64,000 bases of DNA. It comes from Vicugna vicugna (taxonomy: Eukaryota). The notes under the pieces were generated by a model that did no database searches, was not told the DNA's origin, and saw only the letters and a list, made by a program, of their open reading frames with translations. Position numbers and translations under genes: made by a program. Shown in pieces: positions 3,001 through 50,773 of this stretch. The stretch lies in NCBI GenBank assembly GCA_013265495.1, contig MU063048.1, positions 3,472,001-3,536,000 of the forward strand, in the 5' to 3' direction. Positions within the stretch are counted from its first letter, which is position 1. Each line of letters begins with the position of its first letter.

Positions 3001-3249
3001 CCCGGGCAGCTGTTCCCAACCCTTGGTGGCACATTAGTCACACAAGTTGCACAAGGAAATACACAGCATGCCCCTTAAAATGGAATTTCAGATTAAACAA
3101 TGAATGGTTTTTTTTAATGTAAGTACATCCCAAATATTGCAAGGGACATACTTGCATTAAAAATTGCTCATCTGAATTTAAGTTTAACTGGGCATCGTAT
3201 GTTTTCGTTTGCTAAATCTGACAAATCTAAGCCTTCAGAAAATCCTGAG

Positions 3250-3372: not shown

Positions 3373-6300
3373 ATGTGCATTTCGACTCTGAACCTGTTCT
3401 TATGACCTCCAGTTGTAAGGGCCCACCTCCTTTCCAAGGGATCCTGGGCCCTGGCTTCCTGCAGGCCGACTTCAGGGAGCTGTGGACCCACAGGCTTGCA
3501 GTGAGGCAGCAGACACTAGCGGCTGTGACCCCTCTGCCCTTCCTTAGACGGGGAGCTTTGTTCTAGCAAAGTCTCCCCATTAGGATTCTTGGGAAGTGAA
3601 GTGTGTCTGCCCGGACACTGGGCCCCTTTCCGCACATTGGACTGTTACGTGCGGTTGATCCTGGGCTCTGCACAGTCACACATGTGTCGCTCACTCCTTG
3701 GGCACCCTGAGTTCTCGTGTGGGCTTCCTGGGCCTGTGTGCCCACAGCAGGGCACCCCGTCTCCCATGGAGGCCCCAGACATTGGGACCAGGCTCTGCTG
3801 TCCCATCTCAAGCTGTGGTTGTGTGTGTGAGGGCTGAGTGCAGACCTCGAGCCTGTTGGGTCCCCCGCCCCCCTAGGACTGTGACTGCGTCCTGGGACCC
3901 ACGCTCAGCATGGGGCCCCCTTTCAAGATTTGTCCTCTCAGCCAGGATTCAGAGCAGGGTTTCTCTGGATCCCCACTTATTTTTCCCTCCTCACTCGTTG
4001 GAGTCCTGGTGCCTGTCGTGTGCCTAATCCCTGGAGCCACCCCTGGCCTTGGGGCTAGGATAGGTGAGCCTCCTCCATGGACTTTGCCCTGTGGGAGGGT
4101 TGGGTCTCCAGGGCATGGCTCAGTCTGGCCTGTCTGCTTTGAGCGGGACCCCGTGCCTCACTGGCAGGTCTACAGATAAAATACTAGTGTTCTAGCATTG
4201 CCGACTGAGACAGGGGCAACCGAAGGCAAGCGGGTATAAGATGTTGGGGTCTATTTTAGATTTGTACCGTTCCAAATCCTTAGAGCATGACCAAATGTTA
4301 AGATCTGGTAATTATTGGGATTATGGGATTAAAGACAGAATTTTGAGATCATTTGTATAGAGTTTAGATGAGAGCGTCAGTGAGTTCTCCGAGGAGAGTC
4401 GCAGATGTCAAATACACCACTCAGTGAGGAGCCCGGTGGAGCGGGCTGGTGGCCAAAGCAGGAAGAAATGCCAGACCGTTGTCAGTTTCTGGTCGTGCAT
4501 AGATCATAAGCACCACTAATGGGAGCAGGTCTAACTAGGATGGAGTGAAAGTGTCGTCTCAGAGAATGGGCATCCTCCGAAACCTGAGAGGCACATGGCT
4601 TATGGAGGGAGATTAAACTTTTAGATATTTTTACACGTGCTCGTTTAGAAAGAAACCAGATAGTGTTTGCAAGGAGATGACCTTGTAGGAAAAATACTGA
4701 GGCGTCGCAGCCAGAAGACGAGCTCAGTCTTAATGACGCCTTCTGCACTGGGGGGTGCCGTGCAGGGAAGAGAGCAGAGCGTTTAACCTGAGCGGGAGTA
4801 CAGCACAACACGCCAGGAGATTAAGTGGGAGGAACATATAGTCCCAGATAGAAACAAAACACAGCCCTGTGAGAAGCTGAGAACTGCCTGAATCCCTGAG
4901 CGTGTTAGTAACTAATTAACTGGCGGGCTACCTGAGACTAATGGCACTGATGGCTTAAGTCACAGTAAATCTGAGTGGATAATTCCTTCTGTGTTGTTAG
5001 TGGAGGAAGTGGCTTTTCTCCTTTCATGGCCAAAATTCATGAGGACGAAGGCCACATGTGGTGGCAAGTCTGAAGGTAAACTTTGATAAGTAGTAATCAG
5101 CTCTCAGGCGTCTTCTGAAAAAAATGATTTGGAAAACTATTGCAAGAGAATGTAACAAAATATAATACTTGAAGGCAAAATTTTAAGAACAGAGTTTTCA
5201 TCAAAGAATATCACTCGGAAGCCCACGTTTTTGTTATTTCTAAGCCCAAGTATGTTGACAGATTTGGTCAGCTTCCCCAGCTTCTATTTTGGAGCTGATA
5301 TTCTTTCATTGGTGCTTGAATTTAGTAAGGAAACTTATCTTAACAGTGTTAATTATTAAAATAAAAAATTATTTACAGGAAGTATATCTAGATATAAGGT
5401 TAGGATTAATTCTATCATAATTCCTATTTTTAATTTTTAATAAAGATATTAGTTCATCTGGGGGAAAAGGTTATATACACTTTGCAGATGTGAATTTGGT
5501 TAAATCAGTATTGACAGGAGCAATATTTAATACAAATATGGATGATTATGAAATGTATGTAAATGGTATGCCATTTCATTAAAAATATATACCCATGTTA
5601 TAAAATAGTCTTAGTTACTTAATCACTTGAAAAAAGCCCAAATTTTAGCATTTTGAGTTGAGGATTTTCTTGCAGCTGGAGTCCCCATTTTATAGAATGT
5701 GGATTTTTATAGGCTTTGTAATCTTCATCTGGTTAATTTTCTCTAAAATTAAAAAAAAAACCCTGCATTTTGTAACTCTCATCTGGTTAATTTTCTTTTA
5801 AAATTAGAAAAAAAAAAACCTGCTCTTGAGTTTGACATTAGCTGTCAGAACTTTTCGTAGAGAGAGAAATGGGAGGTGATACTAAGTACAACTTGTAAAA
5901 AGCACTTACTAGTTTTTATAACATCTACCTGGAAACCGAACTTATCTATCTTTAAATAGCACTACTTCTCTGTTACATAGGAAGCGTTGGTGCCCGTGTG
6001 AGTAATTCTGTGGAGTGAATAGAAAGCAAAGAGCAGCGCTGTGATAGCACGTGGGGAAGTGTCCACGCTCAGATCTGACCCATGTGGCTTTGTGAGCTAC
6101 ATACCTGTGCAAACGCACTCGCCAGCGATGAGGTCAGTTTGAAAAGTATATTGCTTATAACGGAATTAAACCAAAACGAGGAATTTTACAGTGATTATAA
6201 ATGCCAAATTGAACTGATCTCATTAAATGTGAAATTCAAGAATATTTAGACTGTTGCTTGAATTTTAATACATGAAAATAATGAGATGTGGCCAGAAGAG

Positions 6301-12818: not shown

Positions 12819-12949
12819 AGTTTTTAATTTTTGGGGGGGGTAATTAGATTTCTTTGTTGGTTTATTTATAATGGAGGTACTGGGATTGAACCCAGGAATT
12901 TGCATATGCTAAGCACACACTCGACCACTGAGCTATACCTTCCCCACTA
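12819..12949 (-). mobile_element. tRNA-derived SINE of camelid Vic-1 type, with 14-bp target site duplication
   Basis: Reverse complement reads GGGGAAGGTATAGCTCAGTGG (A box)...GGGTTCAATCCCAGTACCTCC (B box), then an A-rich tail; TSD ctttgcctataatc at 12805-12818 and 12950-12963. Confidence 0.88.
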
Positions 12950-13199: not shown

Positions 13200-13761
13200 N
13201 NNNNNNNNNNNNNNNNNNNNNNNNNNNNNNNNNNNNNNNNNNNNNNNNNNNNNNNNNNNNNNNNNNNNNNNNNNNNNNNNNNNNNNNNNNNNNNNNNNNN
13301 NNNNNNNNNNNNNNNNNNNNNNNNNNNNNNNNNNNNNNNNNNNNNNNNNNNNNNNNNNNNNNNNNNNNNNNNNNNNNNNNNNNNNNNNNNNNNNNNNNNN
13401 NNNNNNNNNNNNNNNNNNNNNNNNNNNNNNNNNNNNNNNNNNNNNNNNNNNNNNNNNNNNNNNNNNNNNNNNNNNNNNNNNNNNNNNNNNNNNNNNNNNN
13501 NNNNNNNNNNNNNNNNNNNNNNNNNNNNNNNNNNNNNNNNNNNNNNNNNNNNNNNNNNNNNNNNNNNNNNNNNNNNNNNNNNNNNNNNNNNNNNNNNNNN
13601 NNNNNNNNNNNNNNNNNNNNNNNNNNNNNNNNNNNNNNNNNNNNNNNNNNNNNNNNNNNNNNNNNNNNNNNNNNNNNNNNNNNNNNNNNNNNNNNNNNNN
13701 NNNNNNNNNNNNNNNNNNNNNNNNNNNNNNNNNNNNNNNNNNNNNNNNNNNNNNNNNNNNN
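13200..13761. other. Assembly gap (562 N)
   Basis: Run of n. Confidence 1.
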
Positions 13762-15047: not shown

Positions 15048-15095
15048 ATGCTGTGTGTGAATTCGATTTCTCATTACTCAATCGTGTGTCCACAG

Positions 15096-15174
15096 GCTAA
15101 GGAGCAGGTGTGGTCACACCCCGGCCTGAAGGGAACAGCACCTGCCAAAGATGAAAGGACAGCGCCCCCCACAG
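15096..15174 (+). CDS. MYLK4: MYLK4 exon 3 (AKEQVWSHPGLKGTAPAKDERTAPPT), phase 0 to 1
   Basis: ccacag|gctaag acceptor and acag|gtaacc donor; resembles human AKEVWSNADLTERMPVKSKRTSALA (recalled); joins exon 4 in frame. Confidence 0.85.
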
Positions 15175-15512
15175 GTAACCTCTTTAGGAGACTGGATGTT
15201 TATGGACGAGGAAAGCCCTGTGACCCGAGTCCTGTGCTGTGGTTCTTACTCAGAGGAGGCACCTGTTCCTGACGCCTGTGTTGGGAGAAGTGCGGTCTGA
15301 ATCCGGGGCTTTGACTGGTGTGGGTCCTGCTAGTTACAGACTAGAAAGTCTTCGGGAGCCCACTGGTCACGTTCATGCCCACTTTGCTTTCCCAAAGCTT
15401 GTATCAGCCGACAAAGAGAAACCCGGACAGGGAGGCCACTGGGTGAAGCCGCGCTTATACTGACCACCTGTGTCCTCCATTAAAATGTTTTGTGTCCTAT
15501 GGTGGCTTTTAG

Positions 15513-15963
15513 AGAGATCTTCCCCGAAGAGCCAGCTCTCCTCTGAGAAAGACAAGTTTAATAAACTCAACAAGGAAAACGCTGAGAAGACCAGTGCCTC
15601 TCTAGTTCCGAGAAGTTTTGCCACGTTTCACACTGAAAGATCACAAGATGAAGTAAAAGCTTTTGCTTTAAGAAATCCCACAAAGACAAAAGAAAATGTG
15701 GACGGACGAGGCAGTCCATGCCCAGAGAGCCGGAGCGGACAAGAGAATATCAGCCCTGGGAGTGGTCAGCCAAGCCCTGTGGGTGCCAGTGAACGTCCCG
15801 TGTGCAAAGGGGAGAGAAATGGGCTTGGTTCTCAGGAAGAGCCTGGTGACGGAGAAGCTAAGGGAAGAGGAGAACCCGCGACTGCACATGACACGGCGCC
15901 GGACAAGAGTTCCAGGGAAGAGCAGCGTGTTCACAGAGCGAACGGTGGTCAATTCTACGAAAG
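15513..15963 (+). CDS. MYLK4: Candidate alternative MYLK4 exon A (451 nt, phase 1 to 2), charged/disordered N-terminal region
   Basis: gcttttag|agagatc acceptor and gaaag|gtaggg donor; open throughout (ORF 15470-15967); phase matches the exon 3 end and the exon B start. Confidence 0.7.
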
Positions 15964-17074
15964 GTAGGGCTCAGAGCATCGTATCTGCAGCCGACGCTTC
16001 CTGCAGGGCCGCGCGCCGTCTCAATTTAAGGCCGTAGCAAAGGATAGCTGACGCCACTCTTTAAAGCAGTGGTTTGAGAGCCCAGCTGTGTGGCTCTTTC
16101 TTGTCATCATTTATCCTTCTTGCCTGTGACATTTCCAGGCACTTTATTGTCTTCTTAGCCTTCTACCAACGGACAGGCAGAGATCATGATTACTAGGAAT
16201 TGCATCCAGTATTTTTAAAAGATCAGGTAAAAAGCTCTTATTTTTTGCAGTATCGAGCACAAAAAAACTGGACAATGACCAGATTTATAAATTGGCTCTT
16301 TTCCCCCAGAACGGTGAGGCTTGAGTAAGAAGTGGATTACTGAATGATTCTCCCTGAATTGTAAAGTTTCACACATAATTCAGGCAGTTGTGTGGCTGAT
16401 TAAAATGAATTAAACTACGTTATGATAAGCCACAGGATCTATTTGGAGCAGAGAGCACCCAATCCAAACCCCCGTGGTCTTTTTAGAGATTGAAGGTATA
16501 ATTCTTTTTTCATTTTTAAATAACGTATTTGAAACCTAGTTGTAGACAAATCTAGTTTCCCAAGAATTAAACATAAACTCTAATGTTTACTAAGAAAGTC
16601 CACCGCTCCAAAGATGTGCTTAGTAAGGTCTGGAGCTGCTGAAAAAACCTGAAATTAGGTCAAATGTTTCACCAATAAAGGCTTCTTCTCACGGCTGTTT
16701 CTGTTCAGAGACCATTCTTCCTCCATGTGGTCACTTGTCTCTTCTTTAAGGAAAGGAACTGAAAAATGAAAATCAAATTAGGTAGTTGTAAAACGCTTCA
16801 TAAAAGGTCAGAGGACTAACGTGGATCACAGTGAGGTCATTAGGGAGAGTCTCTGGGATCCCGGTCCCCTCCACCTGTCACCGTGCTGCTTGGGTTTGAT
16901 GGGGACACGTCCTGCTCCACCTTAACCCAGACCCTGCCATCGCCAACTCTCCATCACGAAGCTCGCATCCCGTCACCAAAACACCACTGAGAAGGCTGTA
17001 GTGCTCAGAAATTTGGCCATCTGAAAGTTTTCTCCCGGAAGCTTGGAGAGCTGTGGCTGGATTTTATCTTCCAG

Positions 17075-17313
17075 GTGTATCAACAGCGTACAAACCATTT
17101 CTACATCACGAACCTCAGGAAACTCAGCAACAGGACCCGTCTTGCGGGATGCGGACCCAGCAGAGCCCACAGGCGGCAGCAAGCGGAGAGGGACGGAGGA
17201 GGGCTGCGTCCAGGAAGAGCACAAGAGGAGCAGAGTAGACGCGGCTGGAGTGGGCAGAGGACACGCAGGGAGGACCCCCCCGGAGACCGGCCCAGTCCAG
17301 GGGTGCCCACCAG
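17075..17313 (+). CDS. MYLK4: Candidate alternative MYLK4 exon B (239 nt, phase 2 to 1; 3' end uncertain, GC donor)
   Basis: ttttatcttccag|gtgtatc acceptor in phase 2 of ORF 17043-17486; encodes GSKRRGTEEGCVQEEHKRSRV; best phase-1 donor is ccag|GCaagg at 17314. Confidence 0.6.
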
Positions 17314-18551
17314 GCAAGGCCCCCATGGCCGCTGGAGCCCAGGGTTCCAGGCAGCCTGACCCAGCAACCCCGCAGGCAGGACACAGCTTCTGTCCCAGCC
17401 CTTTAAAGCTTCCTAACCTCTCCCAGCAACCCTTCCCACTAAACGTCACTCAGCCTGACAGTCGGAGGGGGCAGAATGCCACGTGATGACATTTATGTGC
17501 ATCATTCACTTTTTTTTTTTTTTTGGTCTGAAGAGGTGAATGCCACCAAGAGAATTCTTTCTTGACGTCTTCATTTTTCAGCCTACTTATGGGGTGAGGG
17601 GAGAATGTCCCCATCAAATCAGATGCCTGCAGATTTATATTATCAGAAGCTTAAAAAATATTAACCCTTGGCAGTGTGCCTAGCACAAAAGTGCCCAAGA
17701 ATGATATTTTGAATAAGTGTAAAATTCTGAAAGCAGACTTACTGTCTCCTCACCTCCCTTGGTGTCCTCTGTGTGCACGTGAGAAGTGTACACAGCAGGT
17801 GCTTAGACAGTGAATCACTGGGGGAAATGAACAGGTTCGTGGCAAGACAATCTTAACAGCAGTGATCAGAGGAAGCAGAGAGTAGACTGCAAGACGCTGG
17901 TGAGTAATGACGCATTCTAGAACGGATCCCGAGGTGGACTACACTTTAAATGCTTAGGCTGAACGCTAGGAAGAGGGAGCCGTTTGAGAGCCGCAGACTA
18001 TCTACTTAGCCAGTTTTACCACGTGTTTTATTTCAAGCCAGAAAAGTTCATCTTTGTGCCTTAAACGTCTCTGAAATACAGGCTAAAGTATTTTGGAAAG
18101 TCATACATAGCTTTCAATGACATGAAGACATTTTTCATTTTTCTCTCTGCTTTAATGAAAATGCTGGACTCTATCGGTGGTGCGTTTTTAAAAATCGGTG
18201 GAACGGTTTCTCACGTTTGAAATGAAATGTCTCAGGCCTGGAAGTGTTACCTGTTTGGACCATATTGGGATTGGAGATGGTCAACCGTTTTGCTTTTTCG
18301 TTTGTTTCCGAAGGTTGTCCTGAAGGAGGGATGAACCACGGCTCAGGGGTCCTGGCATCCTTTCTGAAAGGCGTCAGTGTCCCCTTTGTGATTCACAGAT
18401 CGTAGCACAAAGTGAACATTTGTACTCCCTGGGTCTTAGGGCAGATGGCCTGCTGTGTCTTCTTAGTAAATGAATTAAATGAGCACATGTGTGCTGAGGC
18501 CCGAGCTTGGACTTCAGACCGCTTCACGCTGCCCTGTCCTCTCACTCCTAG

Positions 18552-18657
18552 GTGACGCCCCGGCGCCTCCCGCCCCGTTCGACCACCGTATTGTCACTGC
18601 CAAGCAAGCCGCCGTCAACAGTTTTTATACCGTGAGCAGGACAGAGATTTTAGGAGG
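18552..18657 (+). CDS. MYLK4: MYLK4 exon 4 (GDAPAPPAPFDHRIVTAKQAAVNSFYTVSRTEILGG), phase 1 to 2
   Basis: cctag|gtgac acceptor and ggagg|gtaagt donor; MLCK-family PAPFDHR motif. Confidence 0.96.
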
Positions 18658-20752
18658 GTAAGTAACGCTCAGCTTCAACATTCTTCCCGCCAAAGGAGAG
18701 CGCCTTCGAAGAGACAGAGCTCAGGATTTCACAAGTATTTGCCAGTCTCGATCTGAGGACCAGAAACGTCGTAAGCACTTTAAGAGGTTTTAACCGTTTC
18801 TGAAAATTGTCACCGATGCCAGAAAGGTTGATGTGGTGTCGGTGACCAAGCGCCACATTTGTTATCTGCTTCACTTCCCACGTTGTCATGTCTTGGTGGG
18901 GGGGGGGATGGTCCAGCGTGAGTCACCAGAAGGTTTCGAAGCTGCCCGAAGCTTGAAAACTGGGGAACAAAGTGCAGAAGTGAGAGGACACTCAGTTTCT
19001 CATGGCATGTGTTAAATCTTTCTTTTAAAATCATGGCTGGTTTTCTGTTGATGCTGTTACTGTGTGAGGTACTGTGGTTTGTTTCGGTCGGCTGCTTGCC
19101 TCGCTGAAGGGCTTACGGCAAGGCGTCCACACCCATCTCACCCCCGAAGGAAGAGTCGGGGCAGGCTCGTCACTGGGGGGAGTTCCTTCTTCTGCCGCAG
19201 TCACAGGCCCCCTGGGAGACCCTGCCACTCACGGCCTAAACTGCTAAGCTGACCCCCATCGCTGGATCTGTGTGAAACAGGAGGAGAGCCGGCAGTGCAC
19301 ACCAACCTGTGTGGGACCGACCTTCGAGCGCGAAGGGCGTGTGTGGCCGGGAGTGCCGGGTGGGGCCGCTGACCGCAGAGCTGCTCCTCCTTCGCCTCTT
19401 CCCCCCGGGACCCCCTGCGCTTCTGCCTCCTCCGCCGGCTGACGGTGGAGAAGCCCGTCCTGTGGGGACGGGCTGGGGGGAGGTGGGTGCTGGAGCAGTT
19501 GCAGGTGCCCTGGGGCTCTGCACACAGCAGCTTTTCTGGGTCTGAGGGACATCGGTGGCCAGCCAGCGACGGTGTCTCTGAAGGAGGGTAGTTACTCGCA
19601 GAAGCGGCTTTGACACAACCCCCGGGTTGGTGCCTGATTCTGGTCCAGGTCCGTCAGGGACTCTTAGAGTTTCCTTCCTGCCCCTTTGGGCAGCGTGGGT
19701 CGTCAGTCATCCTGCAGGCGGGACCGGCTTCCCGGCACCCGGTCCTGGGCTCCATAAGTAAGTGGGAGGAGCAGGGTCGTGTGTGTGTTTGCCCTAAAAT
19801 GCACAGAGGCCGTCAGCGGGTGTACCTCCTTTGCAGTAGAGGGGCATCAAGACAGCAAATTATTTTTCACCTTCGGCAGAGATATTACAGCGTGGCAAGG
19901 ACTCCCCCGCTGAGGCCTGTAGGGTGTTTGTGGTCCCTGCTTCTGCGCTCAGTGGGCGTGAGGTCATCAGCCTGGTGGACCAGCGGGGGTCCCGCGAGGC
20001 CACCTCCGCACTGAAGGCCGTGTGCAGTGAACCGCACGAGGAGACAGACAGGGTCTCTCTCAGCTGGGCCAGGCTGTCCTGGGGGCCGTGGCTAATTACG
20101 GGGAGAAAGCCTTCTCTCAGTGAGCTGCCGCACCTGCGCTCCTGTTCACATGCTCCCGGAAAGAACCTCATCTCAGCGGCGGGCGGAATTGAGTCACACT
20201 TGGCTGTGTTTATGGTAATGTCATTCCCCAAGACCCAGCTGCCTCTGCGCAGGGAGTGTGGCTGAGTAGGGTGGGAGGTGGTGGCCTCGCCCTGCCTCTG
20301 TCTGCTGGTGCCACGACCCTCCCCTCGGCAGCCCCCAGGGCTTCAGGTCCACGATGTCAGGGAAGCTCCCCTTCCACTCCTGCATGTGGCCATCACTGCA
20401 CAGGCAGACACCTGGGGCCCATCTGTTTAACTAAATCAGGAGTCACAGCGAGCAAGTCCAACTTGAAAATTGTTCATGAGTGTGCCTTTCGGTATGTGAT
20501 GACAATCGTTAAGAAGCTGTCTTACAAAGGATTTATATCCAAGAGAAGCTGCCAAGTCTCACAGCTGAATATGTAATATGTATTTTGATTACATGCATCT
20601 ATATGCAATTTTGTTATTACTTCTTATTTGTTTGTATGCAGTTCCCCAAAATAACTTGATGTGCCTGACCTCTAGTCTGTGTGGCTCCTGTGCTTACAGA
20701 GCCCAGCTTATGGCATTGATATGGATTTGGAAAGATTCTGTTTTTTTTCTAG

Positions 20753-20945
20753 GACAGAAGCTCTCAAATTTTAGGGTGCATATGACTCACCCAAGCGGCG
20801 TTGTGAAAGTGCAGATCCTGGGGCCTCGCCCGGCCTTCCTGCATCAGCAGGTCTGGGGTGGGCCCCGGAGAATCGCTCCCCGGGGTGCATATCAGAACTT
20901 GGCACTTCTCTAGAAGATGCTGGCTGCAGCAGGTGCACAGCAGGC
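20753..20945. mobile_element. MER5A-like DNA transposon relic
   Basis: ctctcaaattttagggtgcatatgactcacc...gcagatcctggggcc...cagcaggtctggggtgggccccggagaatc; boundaries approximate. Confidence 0.65.
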
Positions 20946-21045
20946 TTGCTCATTCACACTCAGAGAGAGCCCACTGGGCAGGGGCTGCAGCCAGGCCCTG
21001 GCAGGGACAGAGCCTCAGCTGGGCCATTGTCCTCTTCCTCTACAG

Positions 21046-21139
21046 GGGACGCTTCGGCCAGGTTCACAAGTGTGAAGAGAAAGCCACGGGCCTGAAGCTG
21101 GCGGCCAAGATCATCAGGACGAGAGGCACGAAGGACAAG
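21046..21139 (+). CDS. MYLK4: MYLK4 exon 5 (GRFGQVHKCEEKATGLKLAAKIIRTRGTKDK)
   Basis: tacag|gggac acceptor and caag|gtgagg donor; glycine loop and catalytic lysine. Confidence 0.97.
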
Positions 21140-21214
21140 GTGAGGGCCGTGCTGGGGGGGCGCCTCCCTCGCCGTGGTGCCTGTGGCACTAACGCAGCCC
21201 TCCCCTCCTCCCAG

Positions 21215-21324
21215 GACGAGGTGAAGAACGAGATCAGCGTCATGAACCAGCTGGACCACGTGAACCTCGTTCAGCTCTACGATGCCTTCGAGTCCAAGAA
21301 CGACATCGTGCTGGTCATGGAGTA
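21215..21324 (+). CDS. MYLK4: MYLK4 exon 6 (DEVKNEISVMNQLDHVNLVQLYDAFESKNDIVLVME)
   Basis: cccag|gacgag acceptor and gagta|gtatgt donor; alphaC glutamate and gatekeeper region. Confidence 0.97.
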
Positions 21325-22188
21325 GTATGTCCCGCCCCGCCCGCCACCCCCACCCACAGGTGCAGCTCAGCCCCGCCTCGGGAGTCCTGCAGCCAGCGCT
21401 GCGGCCCCCGGATTCTGACTTGCCCGCGTCAGAATCTCATCTGCCCCAGGAAGGAACTCACTTAGGAACAGGAGCCCCGGGTGAGGCGTGGCTGACAAGG
21501 GGTGGGACGTGGGTCAGCCTCTGTCTAAGCTGTGCTGTCCAAACCCCAGCTTCGCCTTTGTTCCGGGGAAGCTGAGGAGGGTGACTCCTGAACTGCCTCT
21601 CACTTTCAACCTGATTGCTAATACAGAGTTCATGACAAAGTCTTAGTAATTAAGGCTGAGAAGCTTCCACTTAAAATCACCTTTATAAAAATTTAATAAG
21701 TGTCTACGTAGAAAGTGAGTTGTTTTGACTGATGCTGCATCGGTATTTGTGATTCACTTCATTCCTCCCACTGTTTTGGGTTTTGTTCATCACCGTGCAG
21801 TGAGAAGTCTGGACAATGAATGCCCAGCAGCCGGCACATAAAAGTGCTTTATCACTGACGTCGGTCTGAGGAGACCCCATCCACCCTTCACGTGGTGTGC
21901 GGAATTCCCTCCCTGCCTCCTGAGAGTCCCCTTTATGTTCTGTCTGTGCTAGACGGTGGCGGCGAGGGCTCGCTCCAGAGCTGTAGCCACAAGATGAAAG
22001 GAACTGAGACCTTCCATTTGGGAAACCGATGGTGGCTAAGATAAGGGCCTTCAGCGTAAGAGACACTGGACTGAGAAGGCAGAGAAATAACTGCATGCAC
22101 ATCTGTTGGGAGAGTCTGAGCTTAGACGGGAGAATCACCCGCTCATCAAGGGGTTGTGGCTCAGGACGTCCCCTCTCTTCCCCTGCAG

Positions 22189-22330
22189 TGTGGACGGAGG
22201 GGAGCTGTTCGATCGCATCATTGATGACAACTGCAATCTGACTGAGTTTGACACCATTCTGTTCATCAGGCAGATATGTGAAGGGATAAGACACATGCAC
22301 CAGATGAACATTCTCCACTTGGACCTGAAG
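22189..22330 (+). CDS. MYLK4: MYLK4 exon 7 (VDGGELFDRII...QMNILHLDLK)
   Basis: ctgcag|tgtgg acceptor and gaag|gtaggg donor; GGELFDRI and HLDLK motifs. Confidence 0.97.
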
Positions 22331-22590
22331 GTAGGGTGTGTTTTGTATCATATGAAATGAAACCCTTCCCAGACCATTCCCTCATGTGGATCCATGGGCT
22401 CCGTCAGGTACTGCATGCCAGCTCGTGGTCCTGTCACTGAGTACGTATTCAGGAATTTAAAAAATTTGGATTCTTAGCCTCATCTCCCCATCCCCAACTT
22501 CTGTTACCCGCTAATATGTGTATGTCTGCACCTTTAGGGACCACTGTTGGGATTCCTGTAACTTGCCTGTGTTCAAGGAATTCACATGGA

Positions 22591-22810
22591 NNNNNNNNNN
22601 NNNNNNNNNNNNNNNNNNNNNNNNNNNNNNNNNNNNNNNNNNNNNNNNNNNNNNNNNNNNNNNNNNNNNNNNNNNNNNNNNNNNNNNNNNNNNNNNNNNN
22701 NNNNNNNNNNNNNNNNNNNNNNNNNNNNNNNNNNNNNNNNNNNNNNNNNNNNNNNNNNNNNNNNNNNNNNNNNNNNNNNNNNNNNNNNNNNNNNNNNNNN
22801 NNNNNNNNNC
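22591..22810. other. Assembly gap (220 N) followed by (CAC)n
   Basis: Run of n, then caccaccaccact. Confidence 1.
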
Positions 22811-25182
22811 CACCACCACCACTATGGTGTCCGTGCTGCAGCCTCTCATTATTAGGTTGAGCAGGTGGGAGGATTTTAGCTAACTCAGAATTCCCTGGTA
22901 AAAGCCAAATTTTCCAGCTCTGCAAGAATGCCCAGCACTCTCCTAAAAATCTTTTAAGACGCTCTGGGCTTGAGGGATTATTTTTCTATGGGCTTGCTAG
23001 TTCCCAGAGGAGAACCCTATGGCAAAAGGAAACAGGGCAGCCAGAAGGGAGGTGCTAAAATGCTAAGGGTGGTGGGGCGGGCCAGGCACCGTGCTGGGAG
23101 TGGTGGAAAGCCTGTGAGCAGCAGGGAGCCAAGTCTTCCTTCTCCTCTCATTAACGACCCTTCCCTTATGCTGTCTCTCCCACTATCAAGTCCCCAGACC
23201 CGGACTGTGCCTCGTTATAACCAGTGAAAGACCAGGTCTGATATCTCCGACCAGCTCTAATACTGGGGCTGAATATCGTAAAGTGCATCTTCTTGGGTGG
23301 CTCAGTCATTGTCGTTTCCCTGTTTGCACAGCACGACAAGGAGATAAAATTTATATTCTGTATAATATGCCATCTACGGAAGCCATCGGGGATGGTAGAG
23401 CTAAGTGAATTTAAGTTTCCTCCGTGGTTTCCATGGGCCTCTGTTAGCTTCCCTCACTGTTCCTGGGGCAGGGGGACGCGGTGTATAAAAGGACACAGTC
23501 GGAGGTTGAAAATCATTAGCAAGGCCCGTGGCTATGAGCTGGTTTGATGATGCATCTTTTCACGGAGAATTTTCACTGAGTGTAACTGTTCTACAAATAT
23601 CCCCGAAGGGATCTGATTGGCAGCTGGAGCTAGGACCTGACCTGCCGTAAGTCAGACAACGCCATAGGTGGCTTCACAGTGTTGACTGAGGGCTTGCCAT
23701 GAGTGATGCAAGTTATGGCCTGTATGTAGAGACAGTCAGAAAGGCAACAGCTGGGTGAGTCGTTACAGACCAGGCGTCCCTTTCAGAAAGCGCACGGGAA
23801 GGAAGACGGCCAAGACTGTTGAGTGCTTGTCACTGTGACCCAGGTGACTTAAAAGTGGTCTCCTTTATAGCTGTGTGTGTGTGTCGCAAATCATATTCAA
23901 TGAATATGCTTTAATTTCATAGCTAGAAAAAAATTAACTCTTTGAAGTGCCCTTGGAGCCGTTTCTTTACATTCTGCAAACAGATTTTTTTATGTCAGTG
24001 TTCTTTGGCAGCTGGACAGCTTTATACATGATCAATCAGTTACTTAAGCGTGAGGCCAAATATTCTTATATAGCACCCACTTCTCTATAAATTGCCTTTG
24101 CTTACAGACATCTGTTTTAGAGATATTTAGAAAAAGACTTCCAGAGACATTATGCCCAACCAACATGGACGGGAGGTACGATGTTGTTTCATGAAGTGTT
24201 TCTGTGTTTCTGATCTCATTCTAACCTCTTCTCCACCTGGACAGGCCGGGGGGCAGCCATGACCCCACCCAAAGGACAGGGCATGAGGTCCTGGGGACCT
24301 GGCGACCTGGCTGACGCCCTCCCCAGTGCATAGGAAAGAGTTAGGGTTAATAAGAGCTTGAGAGATTCAGGCAATTCTTTGAAAACTTTCTCTTTTATGA
24401 ATGACCTTAGCTTTAAACCAAACCCCTTGTCTTCCCCAGAGCTCAGGTTTTCTGTCTGGACAAATGCAGGTGCCCTTGTAGGACAACCTGTAAACACGGG
24501 CTAGCTCGCCTTTCTCCCTCTTCACCCCAAGCCTGTCAGATTGGCAGGGCAGAGCCTTTCCAGAGTCAAACTCCAAGGGAACGCTTTGTCAAGGGTTTTA
24601 GGCACAGAGACCAAACTCAGCAAAACATTGGAATTGCTGAGAATGAAGAATGACTGGGGGTGGGGGGAACCCTCCTTTTACATATGACTTTCCCATAGAC
24701 TAAGCACAAAGGGAAAGTCTGGAGGTCAGGAACGTTCACATTATATTGTGTGTTCAGTGTGGCTTTCTAAATGAATCAGGCCATTTCTCTTGGAACTCGT
24801 AAATCCTTGGGAAAAAATATTCCTCCATAAAGGGGAAATTCATACTTAATAATTTTAGGGGGACAGACGTCAAGCTGGAGACAGCCTCCGCCAGTCCATT
24901 CGGAAGGTCCTGAGGCGGGAGGCCTCTGCCTGAACTCACGCATTCGGGCCGACTGCAGAACCAGCGAGCGGAGCGGGCAGGGCAGGGCAGGCTTGGCAGG
25001 GCCCCGACAGCCTCACCCACCACATAATTAGAGGAGAAAATGCCCACGCAGACAAGCCAGCCCCAAAGCGAAAGGCCTGATATGTTTTTCCTGAGCATCG
25101 TTGTATTTTTAGTTGTGGTTCAAGGACAATTTGAGTGAAGGATGGTTGTTTTCGTTGCTAATGTGTCTCTTTCTCCTGGCAG

Positions 25183-25253
25183 CCTGAGAACATCCTGTGT
25201 GTGAACCGGGACACTAAACAAATAAAAATTATTGACTTTGGATTGGCCAGAAG
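25183..25253 (+). CDS. MYLK4: MYLK4 exon 8 (PENILCVNRDTKQIKIIDFGLAR)
   Basis: ggcag|cctgag acceptor and gaag|gtatgt donor; PEN and DFG motifs. Confidence 0.97.
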
Positions 25254-25885
25254 GTATGTCAGTTTGGACATAGGTGTGTGAACCGAGTTAGGGAGCTTGC
25301 TGGGCGCTCTTTCTTTGCAAAGATAAATCTGATCTAACCCTTGGTTTCATGCCCCCATTTAGAAAGAACTTGACAAAAATTGTGTTTCCGCTCTCCCTTT
25401 CTGGCTTCAGGGCTTGAACAAACTCAGGGGTTTCCACAGTGCATGCAAGAAAAAATATAGAATATTAAAACCTAATACGGTGAAGTTATTACATCTGAAG
25501 ACATTAATTCAGAATTTGTAAGTGTCTGTCTTAGTCTTTTATATTTGTTCCATCTGTAAAGAGATTTCCTTTAAAAAAATTAATTGTGTAAGCAAAGGGT
25601 TCTGATACGGACAAGGAGCTCAAGGGACGAAGGAGTGTGTGTGGGCTTCAGCACATGAGCGAGGCTGTAAAATGGTCGTAAGTCACTGCGTCCTCCTTCT
25701 TCATGGACACAGGCCTGCTCAAGCCGCCCCCATGTCAGCCCTGTGCCGGGGCTCCTGTCACCATATTCCGCAATTCAGGGTTCTGACTATTCTCACGACT
25801 GTTTAAGATTATTGAGCCTGTCTGGTAGGAGGAAGCTTCCTCACAAGCTTTGGACACTCTCTCTTAAATACGTGACTTCCTTTAA

Positions 25886-26134
<249 letters not shown>

Positions 26135-26764
26135 TAAGCAGACCCCTGGCCCTCCTCCGCTGCTCCTCAGGTGCTGCGCCTGTTCTATGGGGCTCTGCTG
26201 TTTTGAACAGAAGCCCGGATGTGGGTCTGCAGATCCCTCCGGACCAGACTCAGGAGCTTCTGAGCTTCTGCTGACTCTTGTGGGCGGAAGCAGTAAATCC
26301 TTTCCCCGGACATCATCTGAAAAGCAGAAGTAGGTCTTCTTCGCTAATCACTTTAGATCCTAGGACACACTTAGTGTCCTAAAAATAATTTTTAAAAAAC
26401 CCCAAAGCCCTGAAACTCGTGCCCTGACCTCCCCCTCAGTGACTTAGGAGCCTTGCTCCTCGGAGGCGACACCCCTGGCTTTTGCACCTGAGGCCGTGCC
26501 AGCACTCTGCTAGCTGTGAAGGCTTTAAAAAGGCAGCTGCACTATTCAGGGTAGCTGCCACCATCCTTGCTGCCACTGTTTAATGAGGAGTCGGGCTGAG
26601 AGCAGTAGCATTTTCTTGATTGCAAAAGCGTATAAGTAAATTATGCTTAATTCTTGGTCATCTGCCCTCCTGTGGTTTCCAAGGACAGAACCGAGAAGGC
26701 AGCCTATCTGTGAAGGGTCTGCAGGTGGGTGAAGGACACTCACCCTGGATTCTGTGTCTTTCAG

Positions 26765-26917
26765 ACTTAGTGGTCTGTCCCCCTTCCTGGGAGACAGTGA
26801 CGCTGAGACTCTGAACAACATCCTGGCCTGCAGGTGGGACCTAGAGGACGCAGAGTTTCAGGACATCTCGGAGGAGGCCAGGGAGTTCATCGCCAAGCTT
26901 CTGGTCAAGGAGAAGAG
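26765..26917 (+). CDS. MYLK4: MYLK4 exon 10 (LSGLSPFLGDSDAETLNNILACRWDLEDAEFQDISEEAREFIAKLLVKEK)
   Basis: tttcag|acttag acceptor and gaagag|gtgacc donor; typical MLCK C-lobe. Confidence 0.96.
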
Positions 26918-28284
26918 GTGACCCTGGCTCTCTGTGTGCTCTGGGGGAAGTAGGGATAATGGGGGCGGGGTCCCCGGCTGTCAGAATTTGTGTCCGATAG
27001 CTGCCACGCCCCTCAGTGACGCCCGTGACGCACCCGCGGCATTGTAGGCAGAGTGAATTCGATGCTCTCGGCCCAGGTCACTGAGATCTGGATGCTCTGG
27101 CCGCGAGGCTGGGATGGGGCTGGGAAAAGATCCCTCCTCTGCCGTTTGTAATGAGGCTCTGCAAGCAGGGTGTCTTGCTGGGCTCAGCAGACTCACCCTC
27201 AGAACGACGGGCTTGGGTAACCTATCCCACGGTCCCTTCCACACGTACGGGGTGTAGACGGCTCCACGCCGCTGAACGCTTGACCCCCATTTCGTCTGAG
27301 AGCCTGCTCTGGACCGGACCATGCTGACTGCTGTGGAGACATTCTCTCTTAAGCCCCCCCAGCTGCACAGGTGGAAGCGGGCACTGCAGTTCCAGGCACG
27401 AGAGTCCGACTAGTCTGCGCGAGACTGTGCAGCTGGCTAAGTGGTAGAACCGATCATCAGCACAACTCGACCCTCCCCCAGGCCGTGCACCTACATTTCA
27501 CGGGCTTCTGTTTTCAGTCTTGCTCAAACCACGCAATTCAAAGTTCAGTGGATGAAGAACAGTGATACCGAAACACTGGGGTTTGCATTCTAGCATCTGG
27601 GGGTGGGGCCTTGTGATTCGCCTGTCACACACTTTTCAGAAGGTTTGTCTAAACTATATAAAGGTAGATAATATTCAAGACTTCAGGGCCAACAATACTT
27701 GCTTTATCTTGTTACCGTATCTATGGCTTTTAAGTTATCGGTACCCGTGACTGTGAGCTAACAGGCAGGAGGTTCGGGTGGGGGTGGGAACCACACGGGC
27801 GGTGGGTCTGGTGCAGGGCCCGGCGCACGTCCTCCACTCAGGGACCTCACCGCTTGCCTCCAGTCTGCCGGAAGTGCGTCTGGGGCACCGAGAACAGACG
27901 CACAAAGCTCGGCCCCCTCCTTTGGCGACTCACGACCTAGCAGGAGAGACGGGCTTAACAGTGGAGCTAACGTCTCACTCACGCAGAGTGGATCGACAAG
28001 GGCCAGAGCTGAGCCTGAGGGTGAGGGCGACTCACCCTGGCTGGAGAGCCAATCGGGAGAAGAGCAGTGAACAGACACTGGTTTTGTCCTTAAGGACGGG
28101 AAGGATGAGTGGCGCGGGAGCTGGTGTGACCAGCACCGCTGTCGGTACCTTCCTGGACACCAGCAGCGAACAGATGGAAGATGCCTTCATTGACTAAAGC
28201 CAAATCTTCGGTGGGAGAGAGACGCACACTTACTGAACCTATGTTACTGATGCACTTTTGCGTGTTACCTGGTCCAGTCCCCGG

Positions 28285-28350
28285 GTGACCCTGTGGTGTA
28301 AGGATGGCATCACCGTTACTTTACACGTGAGGAAACCGAGGCCGGGAGCA
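28285..28350 (-). mobile_element. MIR fragment
   Basis: actttacacgtgaggaaaccgaggc matches the antisense MIR core. Confidence 0.55.
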
Positions 28351-29546
28351 GTGGAGCAGCGCGCAGCTGGCTCGGGGACCCCGGCCCCCTGCCCTGCCCA
28401 CTCCTGAGTCTGGGGCCTCATTCTTGCCTGAGGAGCAGCAGCCACAGCTCCGGGCATTCCAGTCGATGCTTGGACAAAACTAACTGGCCAATGCTGAGAA
28501 TTGTTATCATAGAGTAAACTGGGCACAAACATAAACTTGCAATTACATCAAGGATTTAGTTATTCATGCGATGTTATTGTTAACTGTTTAATAGTCAGCT
28601 CTGACAAGTTTGACATCAGAGTGCAGGAGTAATTTTTCGGCTCTTGTCAGCTACTGGCTGAGGGTCCAGTACGGACAATTTGTGGTAGTCAACAGAATAA
28701 GCCTTCCAGCTGAAGCTGGTGGAAGTCGAGAGTGTTTTAAAAAAATCATATCTGTTTGTTTAGGGTCCTACTGGTAAGGCTGTCACCAAGTGACCCTTCA
28801 CCGGCCAAAGTCAAGTCTTGTCTCCTCTCCCGTACTTAAGTACTTGGTGTCGGCTGCAGCGGCTCACAAGCCGAGCGTCACGAGGACCTGACACTGCTTT
28901 TCTGATGTTGTTTCAGACGCAGACGTCAGATCGTCACAACTGCAATTTTTATTTTGGAGGGTTATTCCGTTTCACGTGATAAATCTTAGCACACAGGACA
29001 AGTTTACGAAGCTGAGAATTATGATATAACATATTGTTGTAATTCTTCCTCAGGTATTTTTAAATTTATAAACCTTTGCTAGGCAAAAGTTTCTAACATA
29101 CGCTCAACCCTAACGCTAACTCTCCATCCGTTTCTCTGTGGATTTGACTCTTCAAAGCTTCTTAATTCAAAAGTTAGCAATGCATATTGTTAAAAAGTTT
29201 TAATACGTAAATTGCTTTTGCAATCACCAAGCATCATAGAGTTTTAGCCTCACGGTGATAACCTACGCCTGCTCTTCAGCGGATGGTGGGAGTTCAGTTT
29301 CTGATGCTCAGACAGCACAGCTAGGGTGGCCGCTTACCTCTGAAGGTAAATCGGCTATTAAGAAGCACTCCGAGTTATTTGCCTTCTTGTCTTACCGATA
29401 TTATCACCCTGGTCGGATCTGATGGAGCCTACGGTCACTGATCCCTGCTCCGGGGAAGACAGACCTGCCTGTGGATTTGCCGCTCCGCCGTCTGGTCTCC
29501 CCGGGCAGCGGCCAGAGCTGCTGATAACCTCCTGCCTTCCCTTTAG

Positions 29547-29625
29547 CTGGAGAATAAGTGCGAGAGAAGCCCTCAAGCACCCGTGGCTGTCGGACCGCGA
29601 GCTCCACTCCAGGCTCAGCGCGCAG
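29547..29625 (+). CDS. MYLK4: MYLK4 exon 11 (SWRISAREALKHPWLSDRELHSRLSAQ)
   Basis: ctttag|ctggag acceptor and gcag|gtaacc donor; subdomain XI R...L.HPWL. Confidence 0.96.
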
Positions 29626-30249
29626 GTAACCGCGGCTCGTGTCCCCCTTTCCCAGCCGGCTCCGACCTTCTGACGATCAGACGCTGGAGGCACCCAGCCT
29701 GCAGTGAGGTTCTCCCTAACTACTGTCTCACAGCCTTCGAATCTTGTGTTAGTGTTAACGTGCTTAAAATGCTTTCACTGAGCAACTCGTGTTCTTTAAA
29801 TGCATGCTGACTGTGTTGTTTAGTAGAGTTCTGTTTTCACAGAGCTGTTTATTGTGTTTGTTCCTTGATTCTTGTATCCATTATAAAGTGGATGACACCC
29901 CTGTAGCTGTGCACACACACACACAGCCTGGGGTGCAAACACGTGGAGTTTTGAAGAATACATATTAATGTGCATTCGAGAGAAACATCCTCCTTAAAAC
30001 AGAACTCAGAACTCTAATGTCCGTGCTCACCTGGTCTAGTCTGCTCTGGGAGCCAAAAAACTGTAATATTCACCTTTCTGAAGCTATTGGTGTACGTATA
30101 TGGGAAGGGACTCCTACAGAGGGCTAAGCAGAGATGAGTGAGGTGTGTGTTGAGAGCACCCGAGCCCCTGCTCTGGGATGACTTCAGGTCAAGTCCTTGT
30201 CTGCGCTCCCTGTCTGGACTACTGTTTACATTCCAGCTCCCTCGTCTGC

Positions 30250-31490: not shown

Positions 31491-32914
31491 CCCAGCGGGA
31501 GCAGGTGACTGAGCCAGCATCCCACCACAGGCAGGCAGGCTCCGGACTCTGCCGTCCTGCGGGAGGGGCTGCTGGGCCAGGGCCGGGGGGCTGTGGTGTT
31601 CCTGGACCCACTCATGTACCGAACATTTTTGGTGTCACTGAAAGCCAGTACTCGAGCTTAATATAGCTTTTATTTTTCAGTGAAAGATTGAGACTAATTT
31701 TTTCCAGAAGATTGATGTTTGGAATAATCTTGGTTCTAAGAATCAAGAATTTAACTTTATATTGGAAAATTTAACTCTTACCCAAATTATTTACTATCTA
31801 AGTCTAAATTCTATTTTAAAAAGTTTAAAGTAAACTTTCCTTTACCTCTTTTAATTGTTCTGTGCTTGAGAGCACGTCCTGTTTCAGAACCCCGAGCACG
31901 CCTGCGACTGACGAAGTTAAGGAGGATTTTCCTCCTCAGACATTAAGGCCCTGACATTCCCTGCCTTCGGTGCTGGGCTCAGGATGACATGTGGTTCCCA
32001 GGCTCCCCTCTGTCCCCGCCATCGACGCACAGCCCGCCTGCCATCAGAAACAGCTCTCAGCTGGGGTGCGGCAAAGGCTTCCCAAACGACAAGTCTGTGC
32101 GAACTTAGCCAACGCGCTCGGCAGGCGTGTTACACACTTAGGGGCGGGAGGAAGGAAGATGGAACAGGTGTGACATGGATTCATTCCCCTGAGCAATAAG
32201 CCTTCCCCTTTCCCGCTCCCTGTGCCGCAGCCTCGGCTGCCGCCCTCTTCCAGCTCACCGAGCTGGTGAAGTATCCCCCACCCACTCTTCCCTCGCTCAC
32301 CACAGCGTCGTGGCATTAACTACAGCTCTGCTCACAGTCTTCCTGGGTCAGAGCGTCTTCGAGAGGCCCCGCTGTGCACCCCAAACACAGCCAGCAGTTC
32401 AGGCCCCCCGACCCCAGGGCACCCCTCCGGTCCCAGTATGTCCCCACGTCAGATTTCCAGCCCTGTCCCCGTGGCCCCTGCTGGGTCGGCCCCACTCTCG
32501 CGATGGCCTAAGTTCTGCTTTACAAGCCGCCTCCTCTAAGACGGCTCCTCTCGGTGCCCGCGCTGGACGTGCCTCCGCAGTCCTCCTGAGCCCGTCCCGC
32601 GCCGCCTAACTCTTGTCCCCGGGGTTCGGGGACGTTGGGAAGAAGCAGTCTCTGTGTCTGACTCAGCCTTGCGGTCAGTCTGTCTCGACTCTTGTGCTTT
32701 GTCAAAGTGAGTTCTGACAAACACACACGTGCAGAAGTGCAGTGCCACTGGGTACGAGGCCCTTTGTGTACCTGAGGGGAGGGTGTGGCGTCAGGGGCCC
32801 CGGGGGACAGCAGGGGGCGTGCTTGAGCTGCACCTGGAGGGCCGGTCAGTGCGTCTAAGTCAGGAACTGACGGAAACGTTTGAATCCTTCTCGAAATGTC
32901 TTCTGTTTCCCTAG

Positions 32915-32962
32915 AAGATGAAGAACTGCTGCTCCGATGGCCAGGGCCCGGTGGCCAAGTAG
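32915..32962 (+). CDS. MYLK4: MYLK4 exon 12 coding part (KMKNCCSDGQGPVAK*); exon extends to 32987
   Basis: ttccctag|aagatg acceptor, TAG at 32960-32962, donor gaaag|gttggt at 32988; aligns with recalled human KKKNRGSDAQDFVTK*. Confidence 0.88.
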   Translation, partial: KMKNCCSDGQGPVAK

Positions 32963-35900: not shown

Positions 35901-37104
35901 TCAGACGTTATTATTTTGATTCGGTGTGAAATCAGGTGAATCCCACTGATAAATCATTTGCTTTTCGGAACATAAGCTTTCTTTGAATTCTGGGGTGAGA
36001 GGCATCAGACGTTCTATCTTCCATTTATTCTGAAATCTCCTCCAAGAGCAGCGGCCTCGTCCAAGCAGCCGATTTACTTTCAAACGCAGGACTCGTGCTT
36101 TCACCTGGCGCCCTGCTCTCTTCCGCCTGAACCTTCGTCTGCATGAAACACACTGGCTTTACGAGGCGGTGCGGGAGGTGTCTGCTTCCGGCTAGTCCCT
36201 GAGTCAGGGCCTTTGGAGTAACGCTGACAGGCACCAGAGCCTCCCTCTACGCCGTGGACACGGGGATCGGTGGGTCTGGTGGGGTCCAGGGGGGGCAGTG
36301 CGGGGCTTCCTGTCGAAGGAGCTTGGGTGCCCCTGGACGTGGGCAAAGACCACTAGCCTCGCCATGCGGCGTCTCTGAAGGCAAGCGGCACCTCCACTCG
36401 CTTCGGGACCTGACCGTGATTTCCAGCTGGGAGCGCCCTTTTGCTTCCGAGCTCGGGGGCCGTTTCATCCCAGATTCTTCACCAGGGACGCGAGCTCTGC
36501 GGGACCCGGCGGGAGAGGCACAGGGCCCTGAGGGCGAGATGCGCGTGGCTGCTTCTTGACACAGGGGCCAGGCAGAGCGCGCGCCCTCCTGTGACCGGCC
36601 CGGCGCCACGCCCGCCGCACAGCTCCCGCACCTCCCTCGCCCTCCCACTCGCAGATACCTGCTGTGCTGAGATCAGCTATAATAATGTCCTTGTTTTTAG
36701 CTTAAATTGTTCCAGGCTCCAGCTGTCCCGAGAGTGGCAAAACAAAACAAGAACAGCTTATTCCTACAGCAGCGGGGGGGGGCAGCTTTGATGTGTGCTG
36801 GCTTCTCTGCATCGTTTCTGTGTCCACCGAGCGAGTCCTCATCCTGTGCCTATGGATAACCACACGTGCGACGTCCTTTCCCTCGTGTTTCAGGTCCCGG
36901 GGGAGCAGAGGCAGAAGAAGACATGTAATGCGTTCAGGCCACGTGCCAACTTGGTGGGCATGCAGGCGATGGAGATGCCCCTCTCCGGCCTCTGTGCCTA
37001 CATCTTGATGCATCTCTTTTTCCCCTGGGCCTATGCGTTTATCCAAGGTTGGTCTCTCTGTTCCCGTTATGAGACTATGTTTAAATGTTAAATTTAGTTT
37101 CCTT

Positions 37105-37108
<4 letters not shown>

Positions 37109-37140
<32 letters not shown>
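37109..37140. repeat. (CA)16 microsatellite in the MYLK4 3' UTR
   Basis: Perfect dinucleotide run. Confidence 0.97.
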
Positions 37141-37142
<2 letters not shown>

Positions 37143-39225: not shown

Positions 39226-39231
39226 AATAAA
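39226..39231 (+). terminator. Polyadenylation signal AATAAA (probable MYLK4 distal site)
   Basis: The only AATAAA I saw in the last exon; preceded by several TGTA (CFIm-type) motifs at about 39194-39220. Confidence 0.7.
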
Positions 39232-48149: not shown

Positions 48150-48960
48150 TTTCTAGCTTTCTTGAGGCATCATTTACATATAATAATATTTAAGATGCAC
48201 ACACCACACCTCACACACCGCGCAACATGGCGTGACGAGCATTGGTGACTTTATACCCAGCTGTCGCCTCCACCACAATCCAAGAGATTTCCATCCCCCG
48301 AGAACATCCCAGTGCATCTTTACAGCCGAGCCCCTCCCCGAGTCCCAGCCCCCAGCTAAATCGATTAATTGGTGTCACTATAGTCTTGCCTTTTCTGGGC
48401 TTCCCTGTAAGTAGGACGGAGCAATACGTAGTTTTTGTGAGAAGAAAGTCAGCTTCCTCCACGCGGCACTGTCTCATTCACCTTGCCGCTTGCGTGCAGG
48501 CTTTGCCCCTTCCCGCTGCTCAGCAGTTCTCCGTGGCAGGAACGCCGGGCTCTGCTCACGCACTCAGCAGCTCCGGGGCGTCTGAGCTGTTTCTGGGTCC
48601 CGGCTGTGTGAACGACGCTGCCGTGAGCCCGCGTTTGTCTTTGAGGACGTACGACTTGTTTCTCTCGGGCAGAGACCCAGGCGTGGAATGGCTGGGCCGC
48701 GGCGAGGACAAGCTTCCCACAGCCACGTGGGTTTCCAAGGTGGTCGCGCCCTGCGCGCCCCGCCCAGCAGGAGGCAGTCCCAGCGCTCCCGGCCCGGGGA
48801 ACGAGGGTCGAGTCAAGCCTGTTTACTTGCGGAGAGCGGTGCTGTCTCCGTGCGGCCTCCGGCTGCATCTCTCTGATGAGTAACGATGTCGAGCAGCTTT
48901 CTGTGTGTTTACTGCCCGGATATACTGCTGGTAGACAAGATGCCAAAGCGCTCTTCGGGG
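48150..48960 (-). mobile_element. L1M (L1MB/MC-like) 3' end, heavily AT-to-GC substituted
   Basis: Colinear L1 landmarks: gctttcttgaggcatcatttacata; ctgtgtgaacgacgctgccgtgagc; tctctcgggcagagacccaggcgtggaatggctgggcc; ctgcatctctctgatgagtaacgatgtcgagcagctttctgtgtgtttact. Confidence 0.85.
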
Positions 48961-50686: not shown

Positions 50687-50773
50687 TTCACAGAGAAACA
50701 CGGCTCGGTTGATTATTCACAGAGAAACACGGCTCGGTTGATTATTCACAGAGAAACACGGCTCGGTTGATTA
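50687..50773. repeat. Minisatellite, three perfect copies of a 29-bp unit (ttcacagagaaacacggctcggttgatta)
   Basis: Copies at 50687-50715, 50716-50744 and 50745-50773. Confidence 0.97.

Follow-up and report, generated by a model that had tools for sequence, protein, structure and literature searches.

MYLK2 and MYLK3 carry a long non-catalytic N-terminal region ahead of an MLCK-type kinase core, the same concept as the MYLK4 insert considered here. Outside the kinase domain, Mylk4 is unlike Mylk2, and its cardiac and skeletal-muscle variants as well as a knockout phenotype have been described (Sakakibara et al. 2021, PMC8041868). Two heart-enriched novel exons of Mylk4, hNE-2 (421 nt) and hNE-6 (290 nt), were reported from mouse heart RNA-seq in 2014 and interpreted as altering the 5'UTR and the N-terminal region (PMC4111849, Table 2); in the mm9 coordinates of that table, the gap between them is exactly 1202 nt. 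Furthermore, RT-PCR, cloning and Sanger sequencing confirmed two novel Mylk4 exons in EDL and soleus of the mouse, and exons 2.2 and 2.1 were assigned to the predominant Mylk4 mRNA species of skeletal muscle (Terry et al., eLife 2018, PMC6008051).

Annotated long models are found for mouse (MYLK4 isoform X4, XP_006516733.1, 618 aa), Cricetulus griseus (isoform X1, XP_035293196.1, 623 aa) and Sorex araneus (isoform X2, 610 aa), and long-form relatives include a partial model from Sorex fumeus and a protein of 520 aa from Myotis brandtii. The mammalian long isoform with both exons, which the earlier note on this DNA proposed, thus exists, as annotated models, mRNA contigs and cloned mouse exons attest. 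The note's description of it as poorly characterised does not hold, since the exon pair and the long form are already known, published for mouse (PMC4111849 in 2014; PMC6008051 in 2018) and annotated in several mammals. What is new in the 64,000-nt stretch of DNA analysed here (the window) is that the conserved donor of the second exon of the pair, exon B, is damaged, and that the exit drawn for this exon at position 17313 is a GC donor.

The MYLK4 locus and its extra exon pair

MYLK4 occupies the plus strand of the window, where the long proteins of mouse, hamster and shrew and the one encoded by L010, a contig from another mammal, give colinear tblastn matches. The kinase-exon matches extend over 18552-29643 on this one strand, at 61-98% identity and in colinear order (18552-18657, 21047-21331, 22190-22345, 25180-25257, 26003-26134, 26766-26954 and 29545-29643). 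Matches of the long proteins to the upstream and insert exons lie at 15093-15174, 15512-15964 and 17064-17324, also on the plus strand. In the orthologue P0017, the Pfam domain Pkinase is recognized at 2e-70.

The coding exon upstream of the pair (15095..15174, plus strand; exon 3 of the earlier note) encodes AKEQVWSHPGLKGTAPAKDERTAPPT and is supported by tblastn matches to the N-terminal parts of Sorex, Myotis and mouse MYLK4. It ends in the donor CAG/GTAACC (the slash marking the exon boundary) and is left in phase 1. The next constitutive exon (18552..18657, plus strand; exon 4) encodes (G)DAPAPPAPFDHRIVTAKQAAVNSFYTVSRTEILGG, is entered in phase 1 through a normal acceptor and ends in the donor GG/GTAAGT. 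Joining 15174 directly to 18552, which gives the short form, is also in frame.

First exons of the 'MLKVKRLEE...' type and of the 'MDATVRKKD...' type, which has a hydrophobic stretch, were both sought in the window and neither was found; they may lie upstream of it or inside the N run at 13200-13761. The shrew long MYLK4 and the L010 mRNA start with MDATVRKKDVWMVGGAFLLSSSLLWLVLRS (L010:179-300; P0017 residues 1-38; also P0016), a strongly hydrophobic, signal-anchor- or transmembrane-like N-terminus that is surprising in a myosin light chain kinase and whose counterpart was not found in the window.

Exon A (15513..15963, plus strand) measures 451 nt, made up of 2 nt, 149 codons and 2 nt, and is bounded by the acceptor ttttag/agagat and the donor gaaag/gtaggg. 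It is entered in phase 1, matching the exit of the exon that ends at 15174, and left in phase 2. Its acceptor (TTTTAG/AGAGAT) and its donor (AAG/GTAGGG) are kept in four other species. Exon B, as drawn in the earlier note (17075..17313, plus strand; 239 nt), is directly preceded by ttttatcttccag, has a conserved acceptor and is entered in phase 2; in the known pair, exon B is left in phase 1. Direct reading bears out the placement, length, phases and splice sites given earlier for exon A and the phase 2 acceptor of exon B at 17075, and both peptides quoted for the pair, SEKDKFNKLNKENAEK and GSKRRGTEE...HKRSRV, are found in the translation. When 15174, exon A, exon B (17075-17313) and 18552 are joined, the frame is open (...ERSSPK...QFYERCINSV...GCPPGDAPAPPAPFDHRIV), and the two exons add 690 nt (451 + 239), equal to 230 codons. 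They must be included as a pair; splicing in of exon A without exon B is ruled out, as its 451 nt would by themselves disrupt the frame.

In mouse, the genomic locus L019 holds exon A at 4079-4499 (421 nt), followed by an intron of 1202 nt and by exon B from 5702, which has two in-phase GT donors, giving exons of 104 nt (GCA/GTAAGC) and 290 nt (TGG/GTAGGAAA). The lengths of 421 and 290 nt and the spacing of 1202 nt equal those of hNE-2 and hNE-6, which on lengths and spacing alone identifies these two exons with A and B. The primers of Terry et al. map accordingly: mouse exon B contains 'Exon 2.1' (L019 5760-5779), exon A contains 'Exon 2.2' in antisense orientation (L019 4254-4273; 1-nt difference in an A run) and the exon preceding A contains 'Exon 3' (L019 3693-3712). 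'Exon 2', read as its reverse complement, encodes VSKSEI(L) and belongs to the orthologue of window 18552-18657. Exon A is mouse exon 2.2, or hNE-2, and exon B is exon 2.1, or hNE-6.

The window and mouse exons occupy the same slot, between the exon of the 'Exon 3' primer and the ...YTVSKSEILGG exon, in the same order and with homologous peptides, and they share the acceptor and donor motifs of exon A and the acceptor motif of exon B. They differ in the length of exon A (421 nt in mouse, 451 nt in the window) and in the donors of exon B: both mouse donors are GT, whereas GC stands at both orthologous sites of the window and the phase is lost at the long one. In the annotated long models of mouse, Cricetulus and Sorex araneus, the homologues of exons A and B stand ahead of the kinase domain, as in the window, and the window peptides are 36-41% identical to them (alignments A3 and A4). 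At the conserved donor, exon B of these models has a tail ending in ...PL(D), an ending that the window lacks.

Searches at the protein level give the same picture. In tblastn with the long proteins, the E-values are 1e-16 for exon A and 1e-10 to 1e-12 for exon B. With the exon A peptide as query, an exhaustive HMMER search gave seven proteins, with phmmer E-values of 1e-9 to 1e-8 to the spliced ones; two of the seven are spliced products in which a homologue of exon A is followed by a homologue of exon B, and one of these continues into the MYLK4 kinase domain. In a word-indexed protein search, for which the index is filtered by length, the exon B peptide had no match and the exon A peptide matched one genomic ORF only. 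Contig L010 (SRR33135686; 2105 nt) has an uninterrupted frame of 608 aa that runs from the upstream exon through A and B into the kinase; it matches window 15091-15150 and then jumps from 15150 to 15511, into exon A. With this layout, it can only be a spliced mRNA. In addition, exon 3, A and B are joined in L022, a contig of mouse mRNA that is 100% identical to the genomic L019 across them. The claim that both segments are genuine MYLK4 coding exons, between the 'AKE.VWS...' and 'APPAPFDHR...' exons, is upheld by orthology, splice sites and the mRNA of other species, and to judge from the compared sequences they are almost certainly the orthologues of the known alternative exon pair.

Several other elements were noted in the window. 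A member of the mir-1302 precursor family is called by Rfam at 3112-3163 on the minus strand, barely over threshold (63.5 bits, where the gathering score is 62). At 12872-12942 on the minus strand lies a tRNA-like element (Rfam tRNA, 38.5 bits), in an intronic or upstream position right before the N run at 13200-13761, and could be a SINE-derived copy and not a gene. Downstream of MYLK4, at 32001-42000 and 47001-55000, several GC-rich 1-kb bins have a CpG observed/expected ratio above 0.6 and hold many long open stretches; they may represent CpG islands or belong to the exons of a gene next to MYLK4.

The exon B donor in this genome

In five other mammals (L002/L003, L006, L011/L012, L017 and mouse L019), exon B ends at the conserved donor TGG/GTAGGAAA, measures 290-299 nt and is open and in phase. 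The corresponding site of the window lies at 17375/17376, 62 nt past 17313, where window 17360-17385 reads CCGCAGGCAGGA. Here the site is CAG/GCAGGA: the GT has become GC (17376-17377) and one base is missing, so that an exon ending at this point would measure 301 nt, be out of phase and run into a stop in the next exon. The remainder of the ancestral exon B (17314..17375, plus strand) is still open and homologous, with GKAPMAAGAQGSRQPDPATPQ in the window and GKPLEAAGTQTSRQQDLVAPL in L017.

We scored the donor sites by their matches to the consensus CAG/GTAAGT over nine positions and by the energy of the U1 duplex. The ancestral donor of the other species (TGG/GTAGGA) has 5/9 matches and a duplex energy of -8.9 kcal/mol. 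In the window, the site at 17313 (CAG/GCAAGG) has 7/9 matches and -6.8 kcal/mol and is the best-scoring in-phase exit of exon B. The orthologue of the mouse short donor, at 17178 (17176..17186, plus strand), is in phase but reads GCA/GCAAGC, in place of GCA/GTAAGC (104 nt) in mouse, and is a weak GC site with 4/9 matches and -1.4 kcal/mol. The sites at 17343 (AGG/GTTCCA) and 17391 (TCT/GTCCCA) have 3/9 and 2/9 matches, with -4.2 and -1.1 kcal/mol, respectively.

GC-AG introns need a near-perfect match to the rest of the consensus. Around its GC, the site at 17313 has a near-consensus remainder, and it would be paired with the normal acceptor at 18552, as in a candidate GC-AG intron. This GC donor is specific to the window; the five other species compared have A or no match at +5. 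The earlier note, which placed the exit of exon B at 17313, was right on the phase and on the sum of 690 nt but was silent on the donor being GC (CAG/GCAAGG) and not GT. Likewise, the frame of its 230-aa insert is open, and the length is valid only if this genome-specific GC donor is used.

Conservation, decay and the state of the long form

At the nucleotide level, exon A is no more conserved than the adjacent intron, with identities of 0.75 and 0.74, respectively, against L017, and of 0.79 and 0.80 against L002. Exon B has lower identities, of 0.65-0.70. Pairwise dN/dS of the insert is 0.5-0.9. On the branch leading to the window, three-taxon estimates, which are noisy, give 0.5-1.2 for exon A, with confidence intervals that include 1, and 0.4-0.5 for exon B. 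Compared with L001, exon A differs by 0.27, 0.25 and 0.23 at the first, second and third codon positions, without a bias toward the third.

The reading frame behaves differently from the sequence. Exon A has no frameshifting indel against L001 or L017, and only a 3-nt gap against L011. In the adjoining intron, there are 1.4-1.8 gap events per 100 nt, more than 80% of which are not multiples of 3; at 1.8 events per 100 nt and 82% non-triplet gaps, about 6.6 frameshifting events would be expected in exon A. Furthermore, exon A stays free of stops in 2% of simulated trials in which substitutions are placed at random at the observed divergence. The presence and length of the spacer and its reading frame thus appear to be under selection, its sequence hardly so.

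In several other mammals, exon A is broken. L002 and L003, which among the loci fetched are the most similar to the window (79% identity), carry frameshifts of -7, +1 and -2 and a TAG (L002:9722-10164). In the related loci L014-L016, the exon is frameshifted and has a further deletion (L014:1553-2047), and in L006-L009 it contains an in-frame TGA (L006:3919-4366), whereas the close relatives L011-L013 are intact. By this comparison, the long form has decayed independently in at least two mammalian lineages, and it seems accordingly dispensable in some.

What has become of the long form in the species of the window turns on the exon B donor. Exon A is undamaged in the window, as are the acceptor and frame of exon B; the ancestral donor has turned into GC and fallen out of phase through the loss of one base. 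The likeliest reading, to which we give even chances, is that splicing through the GC donor at 17313 still yields the long isoform, with a 230-residue insert that would keep the basic motif described below. Use of this donor is suggested by its phase and its score; the GC site is unconserved in the five other species, and the ancestral donor is destroyed, which are points against its use. The frameshifts of exon A in L002/L003 and L014-L016, its dN/dS on the window branch, indistinguishable from 1, and its intron-like nucleotide identity also weigh against this reading. Neither a transcript nor a second genomic copy from the species of the window was found in the sequence collections.

It is possible, though we consider it somewhat unlikely, that the same exons were recently inactivated in this lineage, so that including them shifts the frame and exon 4 brings a premature stop, or both are simply skipped. 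Only the short form joining exon 3 to exon 4 would then be productive, and the open frames would be leftovers. The change of GT to GC with a 1-nt deletion, which leaves the ancestral donor out of phase, fits this reading, as do the independent losses of exon A in L002/L003, L014-L016 and L006-L009, a dN/dS of about 1 for exon A on the window branch and the lack of third-position bias against L001. However, exon A of the window holds neither a stop nor a frameshift, and we estimate from the intron and substitution rates that the joint chance of finding it intact, had it been neutral on the window branch, is below about 1%. The dN/dS of 0.4-0.5 for exon B on the same branch also speaks against inactivation, as does the presence, 62 nt upstream of the ancestral site, of an in-phase GC donor with good U1 complementarity. 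As the frames of both exons are intact, any loss would have to be recent.

Continued use of the pair would need no new donor if the lesion were an assembly or sequencing error in the C run, which is improbable but would restore a true ...TGG/GTAGGA and bring exon B to about 299-302 nt and the insert to about 250 residues; the true sequence of 17355-17390 would then contain ...TGGGTAGGA. The lesion consists of a 1-nt length change beside a C run plus one T>C, and the frame is open and homologous right up to it, both of which are compatible with an error. Yet two separate differences are needed, an indel and a substitution, and the adjacent bases differ as well (CGC-AG against CCCTGG). Exact look-ups of eleven window ORFs, two of which start with GTG or TTG (a weak look-up), found no second copy of the genome, and scanning metagenome contigs with a gapped exact pattern that spans the donor site gave no match.

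An exit through the GT at 17343 (AGG/GTTCCA), with an insert of 240 residues, is very unlikely: from the basic motif to the ancestral site, no other GT is in phase, but the site is very weak, with 3/9 consensus matches, no purine at +3, no G at +5 and the U1 duplex of -4.2 kcal/mol given above. Finally, openness alone proves nothing here because the window abounds in long stop-free stretches (33 reach 150 codons or more, and 148 reach 100 or more), but the idea that the two segments are chance open frames within an intron can be set aside as having a negligible probability, since they are raised above chance by their orthology to exons that have been annotated and cloned, by conserved splice sites and by the mRNA contigs from two other species. 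Opposite exon B, the antisense strand also has an open frame, of 158 codons (16976-17449, minus strand), which most likely results from the GC-rich, stop-poor composition and is no gene.

The encoded spacer and its basic motif

The exon pair, which follows the last N-terminal exon and precedes the first one leading toward the catalytic core, encodes a spacer of about 230-250 residues. No Pfam domain was found in either insert peptide. Of the 230 residues of the insert, 69% are disorder-promoting, the mean hydropathy of 0.364 lies below the Uversky boundary of 0.416, and the charge is balanced (35 K+R against 33 D+E). Composition, the Uversky measure and the Pfam result agree with the probable disorder proposed in the earlier note, as a prediction from sequence, and we infer that the insert is an intrinsically disordered linker.

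Within it, conserved islands are observed at the K/E-rich start of exon A (SSEKEKVNKLNKKNAEKT-like), at an FKGEKNGL-like patch (VCKGERNGL in the window) and, in exon B, at SKRR-x-EE...(K/H)K(K/R)S(R/K)-x-D. The last of these contains the motif KRR..EE....K(K/R)S(R/K), which the earlier note gave as similar to one of non-mammalian long forms and which is the best conserved part of exon B in the comparison made here, which covered mammals only. K36, R38, E41, E47, K50, S52 and D55 are invariant in the nine sequences of alignment A4, and the KRR...KKS(R/K) motif is present in all annotated long models but the mouse model with the short exon B. In L002, exon B has KWR in place of KRR.

In the window, the basic motif KRRGTEEGCVQEEHKRSR (17181..17234, plus strand) fits the classical bipartite NLS pattern KR-x12-K(K/R)x(K/R). 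By the criterion of two basic residues, a spacer of 10-12 residues and a cluster with at least three basic residues in five, it is matched by K36-R37, a 12-residue spacer and K50-R51-S52-R53, as a pattern match only; the motif may serve in nuclear targeting. The mouse form made from the short donor ends just before the motif, and the choice of donor would accordingly include or omit it.

We tentatively propose that, in this lineage, a GC donor 62 nt upstream may have been newly strengthened and have taken the place of the lost conserved GT donor, which would amount to a GC-AG intron arising by compensation and a spacer about 21 residues shorter; more broadly, donor choice might toggle the NLS-like motif and with it a regulated nuclear pool of MYLK4. 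This proposal is doubtful as a whole.

For annotation, the gene model of this species should include exons A and B, and a gene finder restricted to GT donors will fail at exon B, where the conserved donor is damaged and the sole good in-phase exit is GC. The decay of the insert in other lineages helps explain why some reference models consist of the short kinase only. The basic motif, skipped in the mouse form with the short exon B, provides a cheap hypothesis on the localisation of MYLK4.
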